A stretch of 64,000 nt of DNA from Paragordius varius (lineage: Eukaryota; Animalia; Nematomorpha). The stretch covers positions 9,176,001 to 9,240,000 of the forward strand of contig OZ176051.1 of NCBI GenBank assembly GCA_964247055.1. The letters run 5' to 3'. The notes beneath the pieces were generated by a model. The model was not told the DNA's origin. It did no database searches and was given only the letters and a program-made list of their open reading frames with translations. This document shows positions 3,865-63,943 of this stretch, piece by piece (within the stretch, counting starts at the first letter, position 1; every line of letters starts with the position of its first letter). The position numbers and the translations under genes were made by a program.

Positions 3865-5223
3865 TAGGGTTGTGATTTTGACCCCCTTTTTTCGAAAAAG
3901 GGGATCTGACCTAGGTCATACCATATGTTATTGCCAATAATAAATAACTACATACATAAATACTTGATTAAATCACATAAAAAAGGTTTTTACATAAAGT
4001 GTATATTTTTTTAGAATTATACTTTCACCAATCCTGATAATTTAAATTTCTACAATTAACGATCTTTCCTGGAATCATACATAAAGACTTATAGAAAGTT
4101 TCAAATCACAGAAAGCTAAGACTAATGAAAAAATATGCATTTATTTAAGCCTATTTATGCTCTAAATATTTAAAATGTATAACAACGAGTCAATGTCCAT
4201 AAACTTAACGCTAACTTAGGATGGTTCAAAGTTTTTTTTATACTTGAAATTTTTTATACGATTTATTAGAATATATAATCGTGCTCACTACATTTAAAAT
4301 TTCAGTAATCTTATTAAGATTAATATATTCTTAGATCAAATTATATATTATATGACATTGGCATACATGTCATATTATATTAGGATATTCTTTATTAATT
4401 AAATTTTCAGCAGCCTTCATGTTCGCTGCATTATCGGTCACAATGGCATTAATTATTAAAATTTCCAATATCTTTTATAATTGGTTCCATTATGTTATAG
4501 ATATATTCGGCAGTCTTACTATGATAAGATGCGTCAATAGTTAATAAAAATGATTTTTGGGATCCTTGGCCAATAATATTAATTATTTGCTTCCTACGAA
4601 TATTGGTAAAGGGATCGACGATTAATAAAATATTATTTTTACATATTCCAATAACTATTTTTATATCTTCATAACATGAATCTAATAATTTATTGGAAAT
4701 CTGTTTTCTATTTGGAATAGCATAATTAGGTTTAAACTATGAATGAAACTCCGAAAATGTTTATTTTCAACTATGTTTAGAGTTGAGGATGTATAAATAA
4801 ATTTTGCGGCTAATTTCTCTTGAAAACAGAAATTTTTAAGACTAAACTTAAGAAATTAAATAAATAGCTTGCTTTTCGACCATCACCTTCTCATAAAATT
4901 TTCATGAACTTCATTTAAATGTTTCTTCATTCGGTTTTTATTTAATATATATAGTGTAATTACATTTCTTGCATGTAACTTGATTTTTTTTGATCGAAAA
5001 ATTTCCACAAGGCTGATTTCATTATGATTTAGTAAGTAAAGAAAAGATGTGTATCATATGATATTTAAAAAAAATTAATACATATATAAATAATATAAGG
5101 TTTTGTTTTCCTAAAAATTGTAAAATTAAAAAAATTAAAAAAAAAATAAAAAAATTGACCTAGGTCATTTTTTTTCGTGGTCTGGTCATGACCCTAGGTC
5201 ATTGACTAATGGGCACAACCCTA
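3865..5223 (-). mobile_element. Non-autonomous hAT element (internal DUF659-type transposase remnant)
   Basis: TIR TAGGGTTGTG...CACAACCCTA; exact 8-bp TSD ATCTTCAT at 3857-3864 and 5224-5231. The minus strand at ~4380-4620 reads ...FLLTIDASYHSKTAEYIYNIMEPIIKDIG / AIVTDNAANMKAA. Confidence 0.92.
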
Positions 5224-10706: not shown

Positions 10707-12027
10707 TAGGGTTGTGATTTTGACCTCTTTTTCAAAAAAGGGGGTCCGACCTAGGTCATACCATATGTTATTGCCAATAAATAATAAACTACATACATAA
10801 ATAATTGATTAAATCACATAAAAAAGGTTTTTACATAAAGTATATATTTTTTTTAAAATTACACTTTCACTAATCCTGATAATTTAAATTTCTACAATTA
10901 ACGATCTTTCCTGGAATCATACATAAAGACTTATAGAAAGTTTCAAATCACAGAATAAGACTAACGAGAAAATATGGATTCATTGAAAACTATTTATGCT
11001 CTAATTATTTAGATTGTGTAAAAACGAGTTGAACTTAACGTTAACTTAGGACGTTTCAAAGTTTTTTTATACTTTGAAATTTTTTATACGATTTATTGGA
11101 TTTAATATATAATCGTGCTCACTACATTTAAAATTTCAGTAATCTTATTAAATTTAATATATTCTTTGATCGAATTATTTATTATATGACATTGGCATAC
11201 ATGCCATATTATATTAGGATATTTTTTATTACTCAATTTTTTAGCAGCATTCATGTTCGCTGCATTATCGGTCACAATGGCATTAATTTTTTAAATTTCC
11301 AATATCTTTTATAATTGATTCCATTATATTATAGATATATTCGGCAGTCTTACTATGAAAACATGTGTCAATAGTTAATAAAAATGATATTTGGGATCCT
11401 TGGCCAATAATATTAATTATTTGCTCCCTACGAATATTGGTAAAGGGATCGACGATTAATGAAATATTATTTTTAAATATTCCAATAACTTCTATTTTTA
11501 TATCTTCATAACATGAATCTAGTAATTTATTGGAAATTTGTTTTCTATTTGGAATAGCATAATTAGGTTTAAATGAATGAAACTCCGAAAATGTTTATTT
11601 TCAACTATGTTTAGAGTTAAGGATGTATAAATAAATTTGCTAAATGTTTCTGGCTAATTTCTCCTGAAAAGAAATTTTTAAGACTAAACTTAATAAATTA
11701 AATAATTAGCTTGCTTTTCGACCATCACCTTCTGTCATATAATTTATTTCATGACCTTCTTTTAGATGTTTCTTCATTCGGTTTTTGTCTGAATATATAT
11801 AGTGTAATTGCATTTCTTGCATAACTTGATTTTTTTTTATCGAAAAATTTCCACAAGGCTGATTTAATTATGATTTAGAAAGTAAGATGTGTATCATATG
11901 ATATTTAAAACAAAATAAGACATACATAAATAATATAAGGTTTTGATTTCCTAAAAATTGTAAAAAGGTAAAAAAAAATAAAAAAAAATTGACCTAGTCA
12001 TTTTTTTCGTGGTCATGACCTAGGTCA
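10707..12027 (-). mobile_element. Second copy of the hAT element at 3865-5223 (right TIR missing)
   Basis: Colinear high-identity direct repeat starting TAGGGTTGTGATTTTGACC and ending GTCATGACCTAGGTCAT, without the terminal CACAACCCTA. Confidence 0.9.
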
Positions 12028-25770: not shown

Positions 25771-27126
25771 TTAAATTAAGAAAAACCTTGATTATGATTT
25801 TATATTTTTGGGACTTTTGTGCTTTCATTTGTTAAATTATGTATAAAGATGAAAAAATGGCCCAATTTAAAGAAGAAAAATTTTTGAGTTTTGTAATATT
25901 GATGCTATTTTTGCTAAATAACCCGTATATAAATATATTAATGACTCATATGAACCTGGCCGATTTAAAGAGATGAGGAGCATCGCAATCATATAAAGTT
26001 TTGGAGCTGACATATCCTATAGTTAAAAAAAAATTTTAAATTTATCTTAATAACAAATATTTTTACCTGTGGAATTGGATAAAATAAAAACAAAATGTAA
26101 AAATAAAAATATTATTTTTGATAAAGACTAAATGAGTGTATCAGGTAAACAAAATAAAATAACCAATCAGAATAACACAAGTATTAGTAAATAAAATTAT
26201 TTGAAATTGTTGTGTCTGAAGATATTTGATTTTATACCATATCGACTATAATTTATATAACGATAATATAAAAATCAAAATCAGAGATAAAGTTACAAAA
26301 TATTTATATTTGCCTTATAATAACAATTGCATAAATGTTGTAATTTTGTAAAATTAAGAAGCATTATTATTCAATGATCATTTAGCCGCATTAAATTATA
26401 CACAGGCTATTAATGATTTTGGTTAATGGCTAAATGTGGTTTAACTTACATGTCAGTTACGTTTGTGAGAATCATTTTTAGTCACATATTTAACTTAAAA
26501 CTCTATTTTTCTCGGCAATTTTTTAATATGAACAAAAACGAAATATTTATACATGGCAATCGACATGTAAATTAAATTACCTTTTATCTATTTAAATATC
26601 AGTCAATGGACATTCAAAACTCGCAATAACTATGACATAAATACCTGCCTCATAAGCGTTATTAAATTTAATGTTGTATCGTTATTTTAATTGATTATAT
26701 ATTCTTTATTTAAGAAATCAGACTTGTGAATAAAAAATAATATTGGTTAATACACATAAATTTTTTGTTAGCAAGGTGCATAAAACAATGGTTAAACGAT
26801 TTAGAGAAAACAATTTTATAGGCCACTATCTTTTGGGGTAAAAGGCATCGTTAGTGCTATCCAATATGTTTTGTGTGGACCATTCCATTAACGAATATTT
26901 GTCTTATAATATAGGCATTTTTGTGTTTTATAAAACTTCATCAACAATGGAAATTTAAATTTGGCCAAATAAAAAATTGTTATATCTTAGTGAATAAATA
27001 ATTATAATAATATCCTTGATTTTTTTCCATATTTATATAAGATGGCAATTTTATATCACGCATAAAAAAGGTAAATGTAATATTTTGGTTTCATGCACAC
27101 TAATAAATTATATAAATAATAAAAAG

Positions 27127-28050
27127 CGGGGCTTGGAACCGCTTCAAAAAAAGTGAAACCAGAACCGGATCGGTTCCTGAACAAATGGAACCGGAACCGC
27201 ATTGGTTCTTGAGAATTTAAAAATAGAACCGGGCGGTATCTGAAATTTTGGAACTGGAACCGGGGTGGTTCCTGAACAAATGGAATCGAAACCGCGTTGG
27301 TTCCAGGTTTCGAAACCGGTTTTTTACATTTAGAACCGGTACCATTTTCTGTTCCTGACTTTTGATTAAATGATTTATAAAATTATATTATAATAATACA
27401 ACCAAAATATTAACATTTAAAAATCAATCAATTTATTATAAATTGCCAAATATATAGTCAAAGATAAATAGTGTAGCATAATAAATGGAACAAACTATAA
27501 ACTACAATAGGAAAATGTATGAGTACAAAAAAATGAGAGTTAAATTAAGTATGGATCTAAAATAATTTAATTTAACTTTAAAAAATTATTGGACCAAGCA
27601 ATTCGCTGGTTAAACTGCTTCTCAAGTCTGAATATACAAAGTTAAGGGTGAAAAAACTGCTTTCAACGGCTATATATACGAACATATGTATTATACATAA
27701 ACTCGAGTTATGACTATTAGTTTTTTTAGAACAGTTGAATCGCGAGAGTATCGCTAATATAATATTAGGAGCTTAATTTTAAGTTTAAAATATGTAATAT
27801 ATAGTAATTATTAATTTAAATAATAAAATTAAATTTTTATAATAAAAATCATATTGAAATCAGTAATTAAGGGGGTGCGGAACCGGGTTGGTTCCTACAA
27901 ATTTATGGATAGAACCGGGGTGGTTCCTGAAATTTTGGAATCGGCACCGGGGTGGTTCCCGGGGAAGTGGAACCGGAACCGCGTTGGTTCCATCCCAATG
28001 GAACCGGTTTTTTAAAAATCGCAGGAACCGGGTTCCGGTTCCAAGTCCTG
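27127..28050. mobile_element. Non-autonomous hAT element with GGAACC/GGTTCC subterminal arrays
   Basis: TIR CGGGGCTTGGAACCG / CGGTTCCAAGTCCTG; exact 8-bp TSD ATAAAAAG at 27119-27126 and 28051-28058. Confidence 0.9.
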
Positions 28051-28599
28051 ATAAAAAGCAAATAATTCTTTTTATTATTTTTAAAATATATGTCAATTTT
28101 TCCATATTTGACCAAAATAAATATAGCGTTTTCTTGTAGTATTAGGTAATATTTGAATATAAATAACAATTATTTCCACTAAAATATATTTATTTTTTTC
28201 TCTATTTTTGTATAGGGTTCCTATTAAGTAGTATGAGAAATGGGATTCCAATATCTTTTAATAATCAAAATTGTTAATACAAAACTCCTATTATTTAATA
28301 TCTATAACCAAGAATATAGGGTTTAAAATGGATGTTTATAAATCTTATATTATTGGATGTTAAATCTTCAGGATAATGAATATCGAAATTATTAATTTGA
28401 TTATACTAAAATAGTTATTTTATGGTATTAGCCAATCTATAGTATGCAAGTAGTATGTGTCATTAAGACCTTTTAATTAAGATTATAACTTTTTTCTCAA
28501 GAAAACTATGAGAATCGTTATTGCACTTTGACCTCATATTTGTTCAAAAAAATGGGCGATTATGCGGTAAAGATTATGAAATGTTTTTACTATCATAGA

Positions 28600-38713: not shown

Positions 38714-38717
<4 letters not shown>

Positions 38718-38753
<36 letters not shown>
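38718..38753. repeat. (TA)n microsatellite in the presumed CDA 3' UTR region
   Basis: Uninterrupted TA run ~60-95 nt downstream of the CDA stop. Confidence 0.95.
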
Positions 38754-38757
<4 letters not shown>

Positions 38758-38811
38758 ATAATATTAATATATAAATATTAGAAAAAAAGATAAAAATAGC
38801 ATATAAAATAT

Positions 38812-40163
38812 TTAATTTGCATAATTATTCTTGTAATCAATCGCTGAATATATATGACGAAATCTTCTAAACTTTTGAAAACTTTTTGCATTATTTTTTC
38901 TCTGATTCGTAAATTTCTTATTTATAGATTCATTTAACTGATTTCGATTTGATTTTGGTTTATGTTGTTGATCCATAAAATTATTATAATTGTTTGACAA
39001 CGAAGAAACCGGTTTTATAATTTTATCGGTGACAGTCCCATTTTTAATATCATGGAATATTATTGAGCCATTTTCATTCAAATTCTTATGTTCAACTATA
39101 GTTTTATTTGATATGGTAAACATGCGCTTGATAAATTTTCCATCAGCTTTATTATTTATGCTTGAATTTCCGTAACGAATGTAGGTAACGTTGAGTAAGG
39201 GCTCAAAATATTTTTTGTATTGCAAATGATGTTTCTCCTTTATCTTTTTAATTATATCATTATCAACTATGGCTCGTATTTCACCCAATTTATTTATATT
39301 TCCCCTTATTTCTTGATTTTCGTATTGTGTCTTTTGGGCAATTATCTTTATCGGGTTTGTAATTTTACTTTTAACGGTGACATAACTGTCAATTTTACTT
39401 GATGTCATAACATCCTTTTTATTTAAATTATTCAGATTAATGAATCTTTGCCATGATTTGTTAATTGTTTTGCTACGGCGGTAGGGGTGATTAAAAACAG
39501 TTGTTCCTCGCTGATATTTTGGTATTGAAGGATAATCACCGTTTTTACTATTCAATTTTAATGATAACTTTTCAGGTATCTTAGCCATAGTGGTTCCTAT
39601 ATAGTTTTGAGCTCTTATGGGGAATTCCGATTCTAAATGTTGTGATATGCGTCGCAACTTATTTTGCCATGTTGGTTTGGTAAAATTTTCATATCGTAAT
39701 GATGATGCAAGATTCGATTTAGTTTCAATCATTAATTTTTTCTTTGCGGTCTTTTTCTTACTCTGAAAATCACCCGAACGATAATCTAATGAGTCGTGCA
39801 AAGCATTGTGGAATAGATTTGCCGATGGATTTGCTGTTTTAAAGACACTATAATTTTGTAAATTAACAGATTGTTTGAGATCAAGTGTTTTATCACTTTT
39901 ACCATTGGTGGAATGAAATAATGCCATGTACCTGGTTCTTGTGTTGTCCCTTTTGTCGTTATCAAAAATACTACCATCATTACTTAAGTTGTTAAACTCT
40001 TCAATATAATGAGAATAGTCTTTGAATGGTTTGCCTAAGTAACTGTTGGTACTGAGTGAAACAGAGTCGGAATATTTCAACAAGGAGTCATTAGGATTTT
40101 TGATAGGTGGTAAATCCAAAAATTGGTGTGTGTTTCGGCGTTTATGTAATTTTTTGAGACGTT
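38812..40163 (-). CDS. Chitin deacetylase exon 9 (1352-nt terminal tail exon)
   Basis: Contains most of the 455-aa ORF 38812..40179; the acceptor GATATTAG before 40163 is the phase-1-compatible AG; ends ...DYKNNYAN*. Confidence 0.72.
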
Positions 40164-43100
40164 CTAATATCAAAATCAATATAATAGGGCTGAAATACTT
40201 GTTTTAAAACAAACCATTCTCTAAAAACTAATCTTTTTTCGATTTGACCACTGAAATTCATCCTTATTAATTCCAAATTCATCATAAAACCTATTTCCAT
40301 CTGCGATATATAATTAATTTAATTTTATATTTGTATCGTAATACAGAAATCATAAATTAGAGTGCCGTATAGTTTTTTGATTATGATTTATCAATATACG
40401 TTAATGGTAAAATCTTTACAAACCACCTTTTCACTTTTTTGTCCGCGATGATATATTGGGGTACAGAACTCGATGTGAATAAACTACTGTTTTGTTTTAG
40501 TTAAAATTTAATTATCAAACATTTTTCTCCCGTTTTGGATGAAGCTTATATTTTTTACAGTTTTATAACTTCTAGAGAAAATTGGGAGATTTTCGAAACA
40601 CGGCTAAAAGCTAATTTTTGAATCAATAAATATCAAGTTGTTGTTGGTAAAAATGCAACCTGAAATTCTATTAAAGTTAATTTTTACATTTTCAAACCAT
40701 AATATCATTTTTTTGCTTATTAGCGATTTGAAAAATTTTGAAAAAAATGGCGGCGAAAAAGTTTGTGAGGTTTTTTTACAATCAAAATTTTATTTGTATA
40801 ATGCGCAAAGGCTACAGAAAGCATATTTTGAATTCGGCCTAATACATTTTCAGATATTCAAATCGCTCTGGCGTATAAAACTAGCTTGAAAAATCATAAA
40901 GTGATAATATCCACCACTAATGTTTTTTTTATTTCCATAAAACACTTAATTGACACATTCATTTAGTAAAAAAAATCCTTTATCAAAAATTGTAGGGCAA
41001 TGTATATGCAATAGATGTTTTTGAGAGATATATTTTCTGTTTATTTAGTAATAATTACATATTAGCGTCCAATTTAATTTTTTATGTGATAAAAAAAAAT
41101 AATTAATATTTTAACTTACGGCTAAAATTTGGTAATTTCGATGGTTTCAAACCATAAATGCTGGCTGAAAATGGAGATTTGAAATCAAAATTAGCAGATA
41201 ATGCATACGACAGAGTGGGATCTACCACCGTTTTAAAAGCTGTTTCGGCATCAGACTGATTTGCATTTAATTGCTTTCTAACTTCTTGTGGGTCCAACAT
41301 ACTGTAAGTCGATGAAAGTTTATACCTCTTTTCAGGAACTTCTAGAACATTTTTAGTCTTTATTCCAGCGTGCTCATAAGGTGGTAATTTTGGTGTAAAG
41401 CGTTTGAAATTCATTTTCATTATTTTGTTAAACAATTGTTGATTACCAAAACTTTTGTTTGAGAGTCGTTCATCCTTTCTGTCATCATTGGAGTAATGAT
41501 TATTTTGTGGAATAGGCTCTAAACTAATGACTGTTACAGCTGGCAATTGTGTCCTAATCATGAATAAATCAAACGGTGAAACTGTTAAAAAACCTCTATC
41601 CGTTGTTATCGGCGTCAAAGCAACTTTTGTTGTTTTTTTATGCCCCTTTATGCTAGTTGATTCAAGAAAATCTGAGGTTTGTTGTGTGGTACGAAGTGGA
41701 GAAATACTATCTTTTTCTGACATGTAAGGTAACGGATAACTCAACTTATTATTTTTCAAATATTCTTTATAGGACATTAAATTGTTTTGGATGTTATTTC
41801 TTAAGGTTTGTGATTTAATTTTTTTATTGACTTGGGGTTTTTCTTGTTGTAAAATCACTTTTGAATCAAGGGTCGACGCATAATTCTTTTCTATATTATC
41901 GGGTAATGTCATCATTGTGGAACTATAGCCATTCCTGCTTCTTAAATAGTTTCTAAGTAATTTGGCGAATCTCGTATTTTTTTGGTTTTTTGTTCTGTTC
42001 ACCGTCTTATTTTGTAAGTTCACAGCTCCAGTTTTATCCTTAGAAATGTATTTTAGCTTATTATCATTAATTTTTTTGGGGTCCTTTTTTCTCTCATTAT
42101 CTATGTTGTTAGAGCCGCGTGTAATATCTCGTAATCGGTTAACAAAACTGGTTTGTTTCCAAAATTTTGGAAAAGATTTAGGTTTTTCAGTTGTAAAATA
42201 GAATTTATCGTCGGACAATGTCGTACTTTTTAAATAACTATTGCCGACTCCTTTGTTATCATCAATTTCATACATTCTGATTTCACCCATGCGTTGTTGT
42301 TTAGCAGCTTCGAAGTTTTCGCCTGATTTATAAATTTTACCAAAGTTATCCTCCATATTTATATTTCCCAATTTTGACATAAAGCCATGTGATGCGTCCG
42401 CTTTAAGGTTTTGTTTATTTCCTAAATATATTTTATAGTAAATAATTGAATTAATTGTTTTTAAAATTATTACTATCGGAATTCGACATACTTAGATTGT
42501 TTGGTGGAGATTCTGGAGCAATTAAATTATCTGTTTTTCCTTTATTTTTTACATCTTGATAAATGTCGAACCCTTTTGCTTTTGAATAATTGTGGTTAAT
42601 TATTGCTTGAGGAGGTACGAACGCTTCAGTATTTGCCCGATAGTAAGTATGCTTTCTTGTTTGATCCAAATATTGGGGAGCTTTTGTTTTGTATGTATTT
42701 GATAAGATTTTAGCTGTTGTTGATAAATGGTTCAATGATTTTTTTTGGTTTAAAAATGAAGCCAAACTATTTCCCCCGTGATTTAATAACGGAGAAGCCG
42801 TTGTCGATATAAACGATGAAGTGTCTTCTCCATATGGATTCCCATACCAGGGATAAGATTTAGGACATGGTGAACATGTTCGAACATATCTAATTTTGAA
42901 TTAATTGGCACACGTAATATTTTATATTCAATAATATTAAAAATATTCATATAGATTAGGTATTTGTGGATGATCGATCCTCATTAAAAAAGCCATTATG
43001 GTGATATAAAAGTCAGTTTTGATTAGTTTTTACTATTTTAAGGTAAAAAATAAAATATTTGACTTTGTTTATTAGAAGTGGAATGCACTAAAGCAGGGGT

Positions 43101-46100
43101 GTCCAGCCTAAATGGCTTCGCTCCCATTTTTAACTCAAAAAACTTGGCTGGCCACATCTTAAATTTAATGCGGGCATTATGATTATTAAATTTCACAAAT
43201 AAGTCTGTAAAATGCAAACACAATATAATAAATTTTTTAGTTCTTGCCAATTATATAGACTGAATCAAAATTGCTTAAAAAATATCAATTTTATTAAGAT
43301 TTTATGAGCATATGTTAGCAAATTTTGGAATTATAATTTTTTCACCGGCCGCAAAGTCTCGAAGGGCCGCGTGTTGGACACCCCTGCCTAAAACGATGTG
43401 TAACAAAATATTATATTACCTGTAACCATATTCAGTAAAATAGGTGCATACATTGACTTTTTGACTAACACATCGCAAGTTCGGTAATTCTTCTTGACAG
43501 CTCCACGGTCGAAATTTATCTTTTTACATACAAATGTTTTTTCCATGTTATTATTTAAACCAATTTTGATGTAAATAGGCAACATAAAAACATGATTAAA
43601 TGTTAATACCTAATTCATTTAGAGCAGTTGGTCTTTTAATCCATTCCAAGGCTTTGCTGATAGAAAGGATATATACATCTTTTAGGGTAGATAATTTTTC
43701 CAAAAATTTTCGGAGTCCAGTCCGATAATGTGGAATGTAAAACCACATTGGATGAAAAAACATGGGGAAGGGTGCTCTATATATTAAACGATATAATCAT
43801 AATGATAACCCATATACATATATTCATTAATAATTTTTGAACCGTGTTTCTTATGGCCTATAAAGATTTACCTTCATAAAAAATTACCATATTTAAAAAT
43901 ACAAGTTTTAAGCATGATTCGAAGCTTTTTTGTTAAATTGTTTGAATTTGCTCAGATATTAGTTTTTAATACAGATCATAATGATCTAGCCCTCTTTGAC
44001 AACGATTTCAATTGCCATGTCCTAAAAAGTTCATCCTAATTTGAGAACTGTTACCGTGAATCACAACCTTTATTTTCAAGAGTTAAATATGCCGAAAACA
44101 CCCTTATATTACTAAGATATCTTATTTGTAAATTAGAAACGATTATTGACTTAGAAAATCTCTTGACAGATCGAACATTGAGGTAATGGTTTCACCTATC
44201 TGATATATGGATAAGTGAAATGCATTATTTTATATTCGCTGTCAAACTCACTCTTAAATGGCAACTAAAATTTAAACCCCTCTCATAGTTGCTCGTTAAA
44301 GGGCAATATATTTTTTTTAAATTATCGTTTTATGAATAATTATATATTTTAAAAATAAATATGGGGCTATAGGTGTTCTACAAGTAGCAAAAAATTGTTT
44401 TAAAACCATATTGATATCTTTATATAAAGGGTGAAATTCTCGGTTTAGTAAAAATTATTAGCCGAGGAATGACTTTATACTATTCACACACTATGCTTTT
44501 TTCGGCTAACCTTAAATTGACCCTTTAACGCTTAAACATTTTATTATGTATGACTATGATATTTTTAAATAGTCTTTACTCACTCAAGAATGAAATGCAT
44601 AAAATATACATTATAAGACACATAACATACTCCGAACATGCTTTTGAAGCATCAACCTAAGTTCAGTTATAAATTATATACCTGGAATATGCATTTTAAT
44701 GCCTATTCACATTATAGTTGATGTATTGGCATAGTAGTGTATAAAATGAAAAATAATGTCAAATAAACGCCTTTCTCCTATTACATTATTTTTCTCTTTT
44801 TATTTCACGTTTTATTGTTTTTTTCCATACACTGTGTTGCCTATTGACCAACTATAAACTGATTAAGCCACCATTAAAGAGCATACTGTATAACAGTGGT
44901 ACTCAAACCGCGGCCCTAAGAGTGCTTTAAAATTGCCCTATGACCATATTGATACATAAGCTATTTATTATTGTTGAATTAAAACACACACAAACGAATA
45001 TCTCTTATTTTAATATTAATTTATTTTATTTGGATTTGATTTTGGTTTGATTTTTCACCCAATTTAAGATGTAGAAAAATCTACCTACAAATGATGTCAA
45101 AATTTTGGCACATTGTTTCTGTTTGTATTCTATTTTCCTTTCATTTTTAAAATTTTTATTGTCCTTTTTTTGTATTTAACCAAGCCTTTCACCCAAACTT
45201 GCATATTCATATTCTTTTCATTGCTATCCTGCATCATTTTTAAAAGTCATTCCATAAAATATTTTTCAAATCAATACTATTAAATTACTTTATGGCATAA
45301 TTTAAATTGTATTCCTATTTTTTTGAAAAAAATTTACATATTATTTAAACATAAATTTAAAGGATGACATCTAATGTTAAAAAACGTAAATTATCCGATG
45401 AAAATCTCTCCTTTAAAAAAGAATGGGAAGAAAAATTTTTTGTTGTTTTAAATAAAAATGTTGTTACCTGCCTTATATGTAAGGACAATATGAAAAATAC
45501 AATATTGAAAGACATTTGACATCAATCATTCTCATAAATTACCAGAAAATCATGATGAAAGAAACGAAAAATATAAAAAGATAAAGGAATTATTCCATAG
45601 AGAAAAATATATTATGTCCATAGCTTTGCAGGAAGCACTAACATTAGTTTCGTATGAAATTTGCTATTTTAGGAAAAAATATGGAACCGGTTAGTGATTC
45701 CCAACTAATAGAAGAATGTCTATTGGTTGCATTTTATTTGATAATTTCATTAATAAAAATCAAATCATGAGGCCAATTAAAAAACTTCAACTTTCTGATT
45801 CAACATGTGCTCGACGCATTGAAGATATGTTTAAATATATTTTTAACAATACGTTATTGGCTCTGAAAAACTGCAAATATTTTAGTATTAATATTGATTT
45901 TAGCACTGATATTAGTTCAACACCTCAATATGCGCTCTTCGTGAGATATTGCAACGACAACATAATCAACGAGGAATATTTAAAATTTTTACCAATGAAT
46001 AATACCACGAAGATTTTCCTTTTATAAATACAACACTCCTATATTTTCCAACACTTAAAACGATTCAGGAAAATATAGAAATTATCGCGGAGATTAATTT

Positions 46101-48120
46101 AATAGACAATCATTTAACATTTTTATCTAATGAGATAATATTCAGATTTTCAAGAATTAAGAAATATAAAAATTGCTTAAAACTCTTTGAAAATCCATGG
46201 CATATGGATAGACCCAATATTAAGCAACTTGAGCATTTCGGTTTTGATCAGGCTCATAACATTGAAGAATTCGTAGATTTTACAAATGATTTTATTCGGA
46301 GACTATTAAGGAGAATCCATAGAGAAGAAAGATATGTATAGTTTTGGCAGATGTGCCACATAAATATGAAAATATAAAAAAATGTGCTCAAGTTATCCTA
46401 ACTGATTTTCCCTCAACTTACACGTGTGAGATGGCATATTTAAAAATGAAGTGTGTTAAGAATACACACAGAAATCGCTTAACCGATGATCATATACCAC
46501 GTATTAAGATTGGCCTGTCATGAGGCGAAACCAAATTTGTCAAAAATTATTGGTTAATATCTAAATAAATGTTGTTATCATATTTTAATTTTTTTAACTA
46601 AATGATGCAAAACGAGTTTTTAGCTGGATTTACATGCGATCCGCAAAAAAATTCATTGTGCCGATTTAGATTATAAATATGTGCATATGTTTCAAAGAGC
46701 TATGGAATAGCCTTATATAAGGTTTATGGCCCTCGAAAAAAAAATATATTTTATTTGCCCGTCAAATTTTTTTGGTGAGTACCACTGCTGTATAATAATG
46801 AGCCTTTTTGAACAGCCTATCAATAATTAACATATGATATATAAAATAATTATACTGTTATACTTGTTTGTAAAGTAATGACGTTCAAAGTTATCATTTA
46901 ACAAATCAAAAGCTTCTTGTTCTGAATTAGGCGGACTGCATGCGTCAACCATGGCACATCCAAACCCATTTTTATCTTCGTAATGTATCAAAGGGACTTC
47001 CCATAAACCTCAATATAAAACAAAAATTGTAGGTTGATAGAAATTACAAATTAATTGTATATGCGTTATATTTTCAAAAAAGCACATTATCACTGTTTTT
47101 TGTAAAAATGTAAGGTATTTTGGCAGATTTTTTAATTTAAAAAAATCAACGCCTAATTATAATGAGTAATAGATGACTTGAGTAATATGACATTAAATTT
47201 ATTATCATAAAAAGGCAATGCTGCATGCGGCCCGGGGCCTCGCTTTAAGTACCAGTGCTTTACAGTTCATACCATTAAATACCTGGAAAAGAGGTTTGAG
47301 GACAAGGTGGAATATTACATCTTTCTCGCATTTTAAAATCAAGCGTAAAGGGCCATTGAGGAGGCCTTGTAAGTTTGGATGTTATGGAAGAATCCCATTT
47401 AAATCCATAATCTGTGAGCATTTTAAAATAGGCATCTCCTCCAATCTTTCATATAACATAATTTTAAGAATAGAAAAATACATTGGAAGTTGCATGGAAA
47501 GTAGAAAAAATTATTTGTTGTATACTTGAAGAAATGGAGCTCGTGCACCAATTATTTTTTCCCTAGGGATGTTTGCCAAATCAATCAAAATTTCCTTTTG
47601 TCCAGCCATTTCTTCAATCCAATCTTCGTACGTAGCGTTGGCCCACCAAGTTTGAGGTACTCGGTGACTTAAAAACCAATAAAATTTATTTTATTATTTA
47701 TATATAAGTAATTAATTATCGGCAGAAATCATTCATTTACCTTATAGTGTGTGAGGCTATTTCATGGCCTTTCGTGTACCATTCCTCCACCATTTGATAA
47801 TTAGTGTATTCATGACTAACAAAGAAGGTAGTTGATATAGGGCACCCATTTGGATTTTTTCGCCCATAGATTAGCGCTCTGTATTCCTCATTGTTGGGTG
47901 AGGTGACCGAATCATCGAATGAAATAGTAACTATTTGTGGTACATCATCTAAGCTTGCAAAGTTGTTGCCAGCTTCCAGCAAATCAATGGATCCTGAACA
48001 TTTGCAAAACGGTAGTTTGCAGAATTCCGTCGAACACACTAAGGCAGAAGTTGACATTCGCATCATTGTCAGCACTGACCACAAAAGGATGAAGGGTATA
48101 GAAAAGTGGCGATGAACCAT
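38812..48120 (-). CDS. Secreted chitin deacetylase (CE4/NodB polysaccharide deacetylase, catalytic-domain-only type) with ~1000-aa C-terminal extension; 9 exons, predicted 1382 aa
   Basis: Manual exon join: 48120-47741, 47667-47526, 47445-47283, 47008-46864, 43776-43610, 43519-43420, 42889-42492, 42421-41120, 40163-38812. All introns are GT-AG with compatible phases; the total is 4149 nt = 1382 aa + TAA. Signal-peptide-like start MVHRHFSIPFILLWSVLTMMRMSTSA. CE4 motifs ISFDD, HTISH, RAPF, WDSS, PMFFH. Typical arthropod-type CDA ending CPKSYPWYGNPYG. Exons 1-7 are high confidence; joining of exons 8-9 is somewhat lower. Confidence 0.88.
41120..42421 (-). CDS. Chitin deacetylase exon 8 (1302-nt tail exon)
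   Basis: Contains the 425-aa ORF 41103..42380; acceptor TATATTTAG before 42421 (phase 1), donor C|GTAAGT after 41120 (phase 1). Confidence 0.8.
42492..42889 (-). CDS. Chitin deacetylase exon 7 (end of catalytic domain, start of tail)
   Basis: (R)YVRTCSPCPKSYPWYGNPYG continues without a stop into ORF 42451..42765; GTATGT donor after 42492. Confidence 0.88.
43094..43386. mobile_element. hAT MITE in CDA intron 6
   Basis: TIR CAGGGGTGTCCA / TTGGACACCCCTG; the TSD is not exact. Confidence 0.75.
43420..43519 (-). CDS. Chitin deacetylase exon 6
   Basis: (D)KFRPWSCQEELPNLRCVSQKVNVCTYFTEYGY; phase 1 to phase 2. Confidence 0.9.
43610..43776 (-). CDS. Chitin deacetylase exon 5
   Basis: (K)APFPMFFHPMWFYIPHYRTGLRKFLEKLSTLKDVYILSISKALEWIKRPTALNEL; not in the ORF track, read manually. 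Confidence 0.93.
44894..46787 (+). mobile_element. hAT (Buster/Charlie/SPIN, GTF2IRD2-like) element with disrupted transposase, in CDA intron 4
   Basis: TIR CAGTGGTACTCA / TGAGTACCACTG; exact 8-bp TSD CTGTATAA with central TA. From 45364: MTSNVKKRKLSDENLSFKKEWEEKFFVVLNKNVVTCLICKD; 45716-46027 ...SDSTCARRIEDM...YFSINIDFSTDISSTPQYALFVRY; C-terminal FPSTYTCEMAYLKMK...HRNRLTDDH. Frameshifts and an internal deletion. Confidence 0.95.
46864..47008 (-). CDS. Chitin deacetylase exon 4
   Basis: (G)LWEVPLIHYEDKNGFGCAMVDACSPPNSEQEAFDLLNDNFERHYFTN; phase 1 to phase 2. Confidence 0.95.
47283..47445 (-). CDS. Chitin deacetylase exon 3
   Basis: IGGDAYFKMLTDYGFKWDSSITSKLTRPPQWPFTLDFKMRERCNIPPCPQTSFP; phase 0 to phase 1. 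Confidence 0.95.
47526..47667 (-). CDS. Chitin deacetylase exon 2
   Basis: (S)HRVPQTWWANATYEDWIEEMAGQKEILIDLANIPREKIIGARAPFLQ; acceptor TTTTTAAG, donor GTATAC. Confidence 0.95.
47741..48120 (-). CDS. Chitin deacetylase exon 1 (signal peptide, Cys-rich N-terminus, motif 1 SFDD, start of motif 2)
   Basis: ORF 47737..48120: ...CKLPFCKCSG...VPQIVTISFDDSV...NPNGCPISTTFFVSHEYTNYQMVEEWYTKGHEIASHTI; donor AG|GTAAAT after 47741. Confidence 0.95.
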
Positions 48121-51355: not shown

Positions 51356-53269
51356 CAGTGGCGGAACTATAAATTGTGAACTCTCCCGCAAAATTTAATA
51401 CTGGCCCCCCTACCCCTAAAATCGTTTGCAATTATCTTTTCACCTGGCGCATCACTTAGATTTGTAAAGATATATTATATTTAAAAATGATAATATTTAC
51501 ATTATTGGCATCCTGAATCTAAAAGTTTTGCGTTCCTGGAATTATTATATATGATGGCTAGTACCCACCCGCCCACCGCCGATTCCTCAGTCTTAACGTT
51601 CATTTTTAATAAATAACCTATTAAGAGCATGTATTAATCAGCAAATCATCATTTAAAATTTCGTCTTCTCGATGTTGCGTGAGCAAATTTTCTAATTATA
51701 TCCTATCCATTTGATCCGCCATCTCCGCTTCGATTGCGGGTAATGATTTGCTCAATTTTTTTTCAGCCATCGTGCTTCTAATATAATGTTCAATTATTTT
51801 TAACTTTGAGAATGAACGTTCCGCTGTAGCATCCGTAATTGGTAAAGTCTAAAACAATAATGCTGTTATAACTTCATCACAACTGGCTGTAGCTGTTGGG
51901 TATATAATAATTATTAGCTATAATTGCCTGGCTTTGTTAATTTGAGCGATCTCATGCTTAAGCGAATTAGAAACTGAGACTATTTGAATAGGAAAATATT
52001 CACTCAAATCGTTTGGATAATTAATTATTAATATTTTGGCTGAATTGATAATTTCCACTCATTTTGGCTAACTTTGATAGAAGAATTGAAATTTACTAAT
52101 TAAATGGAATATGAATGTGCGGACCGCCAAGATTTTTAAAATTTTGAGAATGACCCGCTAAAACTGCCGACCCCTATTTTAGTGTGTTGTAAAAGTTTAT
52201 TAAAAATTTTATGTTTTAGAACTAAAAATAAATTTAAAAATAACATGCATCAAAGATTAAAAACATTATCAAAATAATGAACATTAATGTATACCAGCTA
52301 TATTGGCCAATTCACTTTACAGTAAAGTATGTGAAATATCAATCATTCTGTAAAATTTAATGAATATCTTCACGATGTATGCACGGAAAAACATTGTTTA
52401 CAAAATTATTGTTATTTTTTATACTTTGCTGTAATATGAATTGGACAACATAAATGTGAGTTGGCCTGCATCAAATTGCATATTATATTATCAAAATATA
52501 AATCGAGATTACTTGTTAGATGATATTGTTATGATGAATGTTTTTCTTTTTTCCCTCCTTTTTTTCACTATTAAAACTGCCAGAAATTAATGAAGAAACA
52601 AACAATTTCATTATGGCTAAAATGTAATGGATAATAATCAAATTACTTAATAATATTTAAATTTACATGAACCCATTTCCTCATAAAAAATATGTAAATT
52701 GTCTTTCGCACTACATTAAAAACAAAATATATTTTTGCGCTATATGAATATATTATTGCAAATGAGATTTTATTTGTAATTAACAGATGCAAAAAAATTA
52801 AATCTGTCAAAATTTTGTGAATTTTCATAAAACTATAATACCATAATATGTTATAACAAAATAATTTAGGACTTGAAAATTTATAAGCTTCACCTAATTT
52901 TTGGTGGCAACATTCTATACTCATTTATTTGTTTTTTAACTATTTTCACTTTTTTAAGGTGTTAACTGGAGATATAAGAGTGTTTATTAATTATCAACTT
53001 ATAATAAAACCGCTTATTGAGATAGTGAAAAAATGCATTTTTTCGCTTTTTCTTCTTCGCTCAATAACAATTCTCTTTATTCTTTGCCAATATACTTTCA
53101 ACAGGCAATCATTAGTTACATATGGGTAAATAAAAATAATAAATTTTAGGCCCACCGCAAAATAGAAAGGGGGCTTAAAATTGATATAAGAAATAAAAAA
53201 GGGCCCCTGTTTTAGCTTTGGGCCCCCCGCCCGAAATGCTCCCCCTAGCTCCCCGTAGTTTCGCCACTG
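51356..53269 (-). mobile_element. Non-autonomous hAT element with C-terminal dimerization-domain remnant
   Basis: TIR CAGTGGCGGAACTA / TAGTTTCGCCACTG; TSD GTTTGTTA / GTTAGTTA (7/8). The minus strand at ~51700-51850 reads LPITDATAERSFSKLKIIEHYIRSTM. Confidence 0.88.

Positions 53270-56982: not shown

Positions 56983-63943
<6,961 letters not shown>

Follow-up and report, generated by a model that had tools for sequence, protein, structure and literature searches.

Introduction

The closest described counterparts of the gene treated here are the catalytic-only chitin deacetylases (CDAs) of animals, represented by the midgut enzymes of insect group V (BmCDA8, PDB 5Z34) and by the 'chitin deacetylase 7/8-like' proteins of cnidarians, priapulids and chelicerates, in which a signal peptide is followed by a NodB-type domain with a loop insertion. 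These proteins of 360–400 residues carry five CE4 motifs and Cys-rich C-terminal loops, have neither CBM14 nor LDLa, and end soon after a conserved NPxG (a median of 2 residues after this C-terminal motif among 75 homologues that possess it, all of ≤525 residues, so that long-tailed homologues lie outside the set). The gene described below lies in a 64,000-nucleotide stretch of the horsehair worm Paragordius varius (assembly GCA_964247055.1, contig OZ176051.1, positions 9,176,001–9,240,000), hereafter the window, which has a G+C content of 27% over its 64 kb. Its product shares all of these features, with 44–50% identity over the whole domain, but differs in continuing for at least 125, and probably 996, residues beyond the usual end, and by its best matches it does not fall in the insect clade.

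CE4 domains combined with a very long region of another kind have been described. Insect group IV CDA5 contains a CE4 domain together with a very long low-complexity region (PMC7953033), and the C. elegans deacetylases LGX-1/C54G7.3 (1876 aa) and F48E3.8 (2444 aa) carry the catalytic domain towards their C-terminal end (PMC3396651, Table 1); the cuticle in which the nematode deacetylases act contains chitin and abundant disordered proteins (PMC9629831). The Paragordius protein resembles these in joining a CE4 domain to a very long low-complexity or unassigned region. In CDA5, LGX-1 and F48E3.8, however, that region is N-terminal and accompanied by a chitin-binding domain, whereas here the order is reversed and CBM14 is absent, and homologue searches found no sequence similarity between the Paragordius tail and proteins of the CDA5/LGX-1/F48E3.8 type. 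A further parallel is offered by the disordered C-terminal regions (dCTRs) of lytic polysaccharide monooxygenases (LPMOs), described as weak, near-neutral polyampholytes and stated to have been seen so far only in LPMOs (PMC8615602). There too a secreted polysaccharide-active domain is followed by a long Ser/Thr-rich C-terminal extension of no known fold or function, but the enzyme class is a different one and the present tail bears a strong positive charge and far exceeds the usual length, making the likeness an analogy only.

Results and discussion

A nine-exon gene predicted to join a deacetylase to a long tail

The gene was rebuilt by hand from the minus-strand sequence, guided by tblastn of seven full-length homologues. 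Numbering throughout refers to window positions, and the joins between the tail exons, having been read from genomic sequence, are predicted. The preferred reading, to which we assign a probability of roughly 0.6, is of one nine-exon minus-strand gene encoding a 1382-residue secreted protein in which enzyme and tail are fused. The model spans 48120–38812 and comprises 4146 coding nt (1382 codons), with introns 1–8 measuring, in order, 73, 80, 274, 3087, 90, 530, 70 and 956 nt. Seven exons (48120–42829, minus strand) are anchored by homology and together specify a signal peptide followed by a full catalytic-only CE4 CDA, the conserved enzyme ending (...CPKSYPWYGNPYG, NPYG) closing at residue 386. 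An earlier note on this DNA had proposed that the reading frame stays open past the usual CDA ending, that GT-AG sites in matching phases link exons of 1302 and 1352 nt and that the total is 1382 aa. The reconstruction reproduced all of this: the exon 7 frame runs on for 125 codons, donors and acceptors are all in phase 1, and the length follows from the 4146 coding nt. The features of the model are as follows.

47741–48120, minus strand: exon 1, with start codon, signal-peptide-like N-terminus, motif 1 (SFDD) and the first His of motif 2; donor GTAAAT; placed by tblastn of the seven homologues
47526–47667, minus strand: exon 2, with the rest of motif 2 (HTI/SH, divided by the 73-nt intron 1) and motif 3 (RAPF); matches 5Z34 residues 103–149, E=1.1e-8
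47283–47445, minus strand: exon 3, with a conserved block containing WDSS and the IPPCP loop; placed by homologue alignment
46864–47008, minus strand: exon 4, with motif 4 (AMVDA); aligned with GCAMVDSCS of BmCDA1 and with BmCDA8
43610–43776, minus strand: exon 5, with motif 5 (FFH); follows the 3087-nt intron 4
43420–43519, minus strand: exon 6, with the Cys-bearing C-terminal loops of the catalytic domain; read by hand and aligned with homologues
42492–42889, minus strand: exon 7, with the final 20 residues of the CDA domain (to NPYG, residue 386) and the first 112 tail residues; the unspliced frame stops at 42451–42453
42422–42491, minus strand: predicted intron 7, 70 nt, GTATGT...TTTAG, phase 1, 17% G+C
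41120–42421, minus strand: predicted exon 8, 1302 nt, symmetric phase 1-1, 433 full codons of basic, Cys-free tail
40164–41119, minus strand: predicted intron 8, 956 nt, GTAAGT...TTAG, phase 1
38812–40163, minus strand: predicted exon 9, 1352 nt including the stop codon, 449 full codons, end of the tail

The enzyme is a catalytic-only CE4 deacetylase with all motifs in place

When exon 1 was compared with proteins of known structure using phmmer, BmCDA8 (5Z34) was matched with E=1.4e-26 and BmCDA1 (5ZNS) with 5.7e-24, and exons 2, 4 and 5 aligned, in order, to successive parts of the same Bombyx chains. All seven enzyme exons were collinear with catalytic-only homologues of 360–390 residues, with end-to-end coverage in tblastn and blastp searches. 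The Pfam profile PF01522 scored 20 bits on exon 1 alone, below the cut-off of 23.1, because the domain is divided over several exons. Judged by this homology, residues 1–386 are a signal peptide followed by a complete catalytic-only CE4 (NodB-type) chitin deacetylase.

CE4 motif definitions were taken from the BmCDA1 structure paper (PMC6463723): motif 1, TFDD, supplies the catalytic base Asp and a zinc-binding Asp; motif 2, H(S/T)xxH, supplies two zinc-binding His; motif 3 is RxPY/F; motif 4 is AMVDS in BmCDA1; and motif 5, YFH, contains the catalytic His. Under these definitions motifs 1 to 5 are all intact and read SFDD, HTISH, RAPF (in RAPFL), AMVDA (in GCAMVDACS) and FFH (in PMFFH), SFDD and HTISH aligning with TFDD and HS(I)xH of the homologues. 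The proposal that five motifs are intact is therefore upheld with one correction, namely that WDSS, earlier taken for the fourth motif, is a conserved block and the real motif 4 is AMVDA. The N-terminus opens with a brief basic segment, continues into a hydrophobic core and ends in a small-residue site, STSA, placed just ahead of the position where the mature chains of homologues start. It reads as a signal peptide, and the protein thus as a secreted enzyme; signal-peptide-like start, homologous domain and full set of motifs together agree with the secreted, intact CE4 deacetylase that had been postulated. Since the zinc-binding and catalytic residues are all present, the enzyme should convert chitin to chitosan. 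The CDA core directly follows the start codon and the signal-peptide-like stretch, and a search for CBM14 found none across the 64-kb window, the nearest on the same contig lying approximately 345 kb away.

The best relatives of the domain were proteins of Nematostella, a jellyfish, corals and Priapulus (44–50% identity), with insect, spider and crustacean proteins scoring no better than the cnidarian and priapulid ones. The framework of insect CDA groups in which the gene had been placed is consequently not borne out, and, because the nearest relatives are not insect proteins, comparison with groups I–V serves as an analogy and not as a classification. Exon 1 used as a query against protein collections retrieved nothing above 61% identity, and fragments only, so that no close relative of the gene is present in them.

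Paralogous deacetylase genes occur on two other contigs of the same genome. One of these, at C3:11378039-11380256, ends normally after NPLGL and bears long acidic/basic low-complexity inserts before and inside its catalytic domain; with ALNSI in place of the HxxxH of motif 2, it may be catalytically dead.

The tail is coding, basic and devoid of cysteine

From the base composition of the strand, the probability of a stop is 0.078 per codon, i.e. one per 13 codons. Against this expectation the open reading frames (ORFs) containing exons 8 and 9 remain open for 462 and 463 codons; no other in the window exceeds 154, and each of the two has a chance probability of approximately 1e-16. Both are real coding sequence. 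The exon 7 frame is open for 149 codons, and the probability of the 125 open codons that follow the end of the CDA domain within this exon is 3.9e-5. As the frame remains open past the point where relatives end, it is certain that, even unspliced, the frame supplies a tail of 125 residues or more.

Composition was computed as sums over the three tail pieces, each counted separately (994 residues counted, the tail having 996). No Cys was observed against 18.3 expected from base composition, and 3 Trp against 5.9. The most frequent residues are K (12%), N (11%), S (9%), L (8%) and T (7%), giving a net charge of +80 and isoelectric points of 9.5–10.1. No transmembrane helix was found in the tail, the peak 19-residue Kyte-Doolittle mean being 1.21, nor were furin-type R-x-K/R-R sites or, using Tandem Repeats Finder and blastp, tandem or internal repeats. 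Over 38 residues the exon 7 tail resembles exon 9; this similarity was exceeded by 2 of 300 shuffles and is marginal after three comparisons. Shannon entropy of the tail is approximately 4.0 bits, equal to that of the enzyme exons. The Cys-free, basic, K/N/S/T-rich character and the lack of membrane helices and repeats noted previously were thus reproduced. The count of more than ten N-x-S/T sequons was likewise confirmed (17), but it is without significance, as 17.0 are expected from composition and a count equal to chance carries no information. Residues 387–1382 probably constitute a lineage-specific, basic (approximately +80), Cys-free and non-repetitive tail with no recognisable fold or relative, its extent beyond exon 7 following from the predicted joins.

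A tail of this composition might be translated and yet have no specific role, as a neutral extension driven by AT bias or as young read-through into captured sequence. AT-bias-driven protein extensions occur in other very AT-rich genomes, and the tail residue frequencies are near the neutral expectation from base composition, mostly within a factor of 0.6–1.8 of it; the tail has no relatives, domains or repeats, and the paralogue described above likewise bears long charged inserts. Such an origin nevertheless appears improbable, given 996 stop-free codons at 0.078 stops expected per codon and the complete exclusion of Cys (0 against 18.3 expected), which together indicate that selection acts along the entire tail, except in the case of a very recent origin. 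Relative to that expectation D, G, A, P and N are over-represented and I, V, H, W and C under-represented, a bias of the kind that disorder would produce. Since a frame of 996 codons has stayed open in sequence prone to stops, we infer that the tail is required and not simply tolerated.

Evidence for joining the tail exons to the enzyme

Exon 7 itself holds the enzyme end together with the first 112–125 tail residues. Downstream of this point the argument depends on splice sites. The hexamer GTA[AT]GT occurs three times in 4.2 kb of the minus strand (background 0.38 per kb), and two of these occurrences lie 13 and 5 codons ahead of the ends of the exon 7 and exon 8 ORFs, respectively. Both predicted donors are in phase 1, as are both acceptors. 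Predicted intron 7 (70 nt, 17% G+C) resembles introns 1, 2 and 5 (73–90 nt, 16–23% G+C) and differs in G+C content from the tail exons (32%; P=0.005), whilst the 41 nt between its acceptor and the first ATG of exon 8 are open and have 39% G+C. In exon 9, 92 open codons precede the first ATG (P=6e-4), so this exon must be spliced to upstream sequence; its acceptor lies 13 codons after its ORF opens, and on sequence grounds the GTAAGT at 41119 would be the obvious partner. A 19-nt intron at 42491–42473, although in phase, was rejected as a substitute for intron 7; it would add a hydrophobic stretch.

The third hexamer, a GTATGT at 41302 (minus strand), lies inside exon 8 in phase 1, and its use with the exon 9 acceptor would drop 61 codons in frame. 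Exon 8, being symmetric (phase 1-1), could also be skipped in frame, and either event is a possible source of isoforms differing in tail length.

The same region can be read as two genes in an operon-like arrangement, in which the CDA stops at 42451 with a tail of 125 residues and a separate orphan gene starts at ATG 42380 (or 42356). The orphan, made of exons 8 and 9, would encode a basic, disordered intracellular or nuclear protein of approximately 870 residues with no signal peptide, and a basic, Cys-poor, K/N/S-rich make-up is also typical of nuclear disordered proteins; the chance-level sequon count is in keeping with this too. We regard this arrangement as rather unlikely. It leaves a rare consensus donor 13 codons ahead of the CDA stop, in a phase that fits the acceptor, and a frame that is open for 37 codons upstream of ATG 42380 (P=0.05). 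This ATG, the first of exon 8, is in poor context, having T at −3 and being overlapped by an out-of-frame ATG 7 nt upstream. Fused and separate transcripts could also coexist as alternatives.

Several points weigh against a single fused gene and have to be set beside the splice-site evidence. Both tail joins are predictions from genomic sequence. Tight spacing of genes on the same strand does occur in this genome, as in the one pair checked, where the ASNS stop codon and the TRIP13 ATG are 59 nt apart, and a start at ATG 42380, 70 nt past the CDA stop, would fit such spacing. An AATAAA is present at 42418–42413, between the acceptor and ATG 42380, so that a polyadenylation-like hexamer and an ATG both occur within 70 nt of the CDA stop. 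That the three tail pieces are alike in composition would be expected of any weakly constrained sequence in DNA of 27% G+C. Finally, the disorder call presented below depends on single-sequence models and a simple index, and the anchoring role on analogy. The order of elements at the deacetylase, on the other hand, with the acceptor preceding AATAAA, is the opposite of that between ASNS and TRIP13, and no nematode-type SL1 gene was found, other spliced leaders remaining compatible with two genes.

The ASNS–TRIP13 pair lies at C2:3906379-3906759 (minus strand), with AATAAATAAATAA (AATAAA) and TTAG within the 59 nt between stop and start. The first coding exon of TRIP13 is followed by a 28-nt GT...AG segment (gtaaat...tgtag) that resembles a micro-intron. 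With regard to spliced leaders, an Rfam SL1 search for a spliced-leader gene gave no match. The nematode SL1 22-mer, used as a lead only, found four sites in the genome, none with a donor after it. Two of these (C4:5338835 and C2:14191890) have 2–3 mismatches, lie within copies of one dispersed repeat, being alike in both flanks, and are followed by no GT donor; they are probably not spliced-leader genes.

Fusion of enzyme and tail could also be achieved without intron 7, if exons 7 and 8 were continuous and the change of frame reflected a sequence error of one base, or an indel of very recent date, in 42491–42454. This 38-nt stretch is rich in A/T runs and open in both frames, and a single-base change within it would unite the two ORFs. 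It is, however, exactly bounded by a consensus donor and a T-rich acceptor and has an intron-like G+C content of 17%, and in an assembly of only 44 contigs (110 Mb) an error is a needless assumption; we consider this explanation highly improbable. A spliced intron 7, and with it the nine-exon gene, is preferred.

Structure and relatives of the tail

Catalytic domain and tail were searched separately, as the earlier note had recommended, and gave sharply different outcomes: the domain matched CDAs at 44–50% identity, whilst the tail was without homologues. An exhaustively read search of exon 8 against 1.84 billion representatives returned no homologue, and a homologous-protein search with exon 9 gave no match. 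In the ESM Atlas the best scores for exons 8 and 9 were 0.77 and 0.82, the level of shuffled sequences, and Pfam detected no domain in any of the tail pieces. Within the Paragordius genome exons 7, 8 and 9 were each single-copy, with no paralogue or second haplotype of the tail. A transposon or viral origin of the tail was considered and rejected, given that it is single-copy and matches no such family. As the nearest sequenced relative of the enzyme is only approximately 50% identical, these blank searches say little about the age of the tail.

FoldIndex was negative in 79–91% of 51-residue tail windows. AlphaFold2 run on single sequences (no alignment) gave a mean predicted local distance difference test score (pLDDT) of 39 for exon 8 and 41 for exon 9, with no confident fold, although for the final approximately 45 residues of the tail, in exon 9, a helix was predicted with a pLDDT of about 75. 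These models weakly indicate that the tail is largely unstructured. The disordered arm proposed earlier therefore receives support from the mostly negative FoldIndex and the low pLDDT, but the indication is a weak one, and about 29% of the tail consists of hydrophobic or aromatic residues.

A possible role for the tail

The enzyme would make chitosan in a chitin-based extracellular layer. Chitosan is itself cationic, and for this reason a polycationic arm would not be expected to bind the product. Instead, the tail may contact partners of negative charge, for instance sulfated glycans or acidic proteins of the matrix, through multivalent electrostatics, and might so hold or space the enzyme in a chitin-based matrix or serve as matrix material itself. 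This role in anchoring to, or building of, a matrix is suggested by analogy to the nematodes, the sister phylum, whose chitin cuticle is rich in disorder. A bolder version, which we put forward as speculative and think doubtful, is that the tail is a new polycationic matrix-building arm that would couple chitosan formation to the assembly, possibly by phase separation, of the larval cuticle, cyst or egg coat of horsehair worms, as a mirror image of the N-terminally extended nematode enzymes and with exon 8 skippable to tune its length.

If the joins are true, the gene encodes a chitin deacetylase whose non-catalytic mass is C-terminal and which has no chitin-binding domain. A layout with a C-terminal tail and no CBM was not found among the retrieved homologues or in the CDA literature cited, and the protein would extend a known enzyme family by a new architecture, in a phylum about which little is known. 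It would offer an entry point to how these animals build or mask chitin structures, and an added case bearing on the function of long disordered extensions on secreted carbohydrate-active enzymes. If there are two genes, what remains is a conventional deacetylase that is slightly extended and has an orphan gene as its neighbour. For annotation, standard gene finders may end the gene at 42451 or split it, and where genes on the same strand are closely packed, calls of fusion versus neighbour are unreliable without RNA data.

Other features of the window

Intron 4 (3087 nt) contains, at 45698–46338 on the plus strand, two adjoining frames of 109 and 112 codons opposite in strand to the gene, which by eye look like a transposase remnant; Pfam searches of the opposite-strand ORFs inside this intron gave no match. 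An (AT)32 microsatellite lies at 38717–38778, 34 nt past the tail stop codon. The nearest recognisable neighbour upstream of the deacetylase is a protein kinase, exons of which were identified at 59297–59566 and 63656–63943 on the plus strand (PF00069, E approximately 1e-15); by eye its sequence appears to be of STE20/GCK-III (MST3/4-like) type. Two near-identical DUF659-type ORF fragments occur 7 kb apart at 4452–4736 and 11286–11594 on the minus strand (PF04937, E=5e-8, just under the cut-off), and a weak fragment of the hAT C-terminal dimerisation domain at 51699–51848 on the minus strand (PF05699, E=0.003). These look like decayed copies of hAT-family transposons. A G+C-richer segment at 27059–28141 has, on both strands, long frames encoding Gly/Thr/Pro/Arg-rich repeats with no Pfam match, and looks like a satellite or repeat array.

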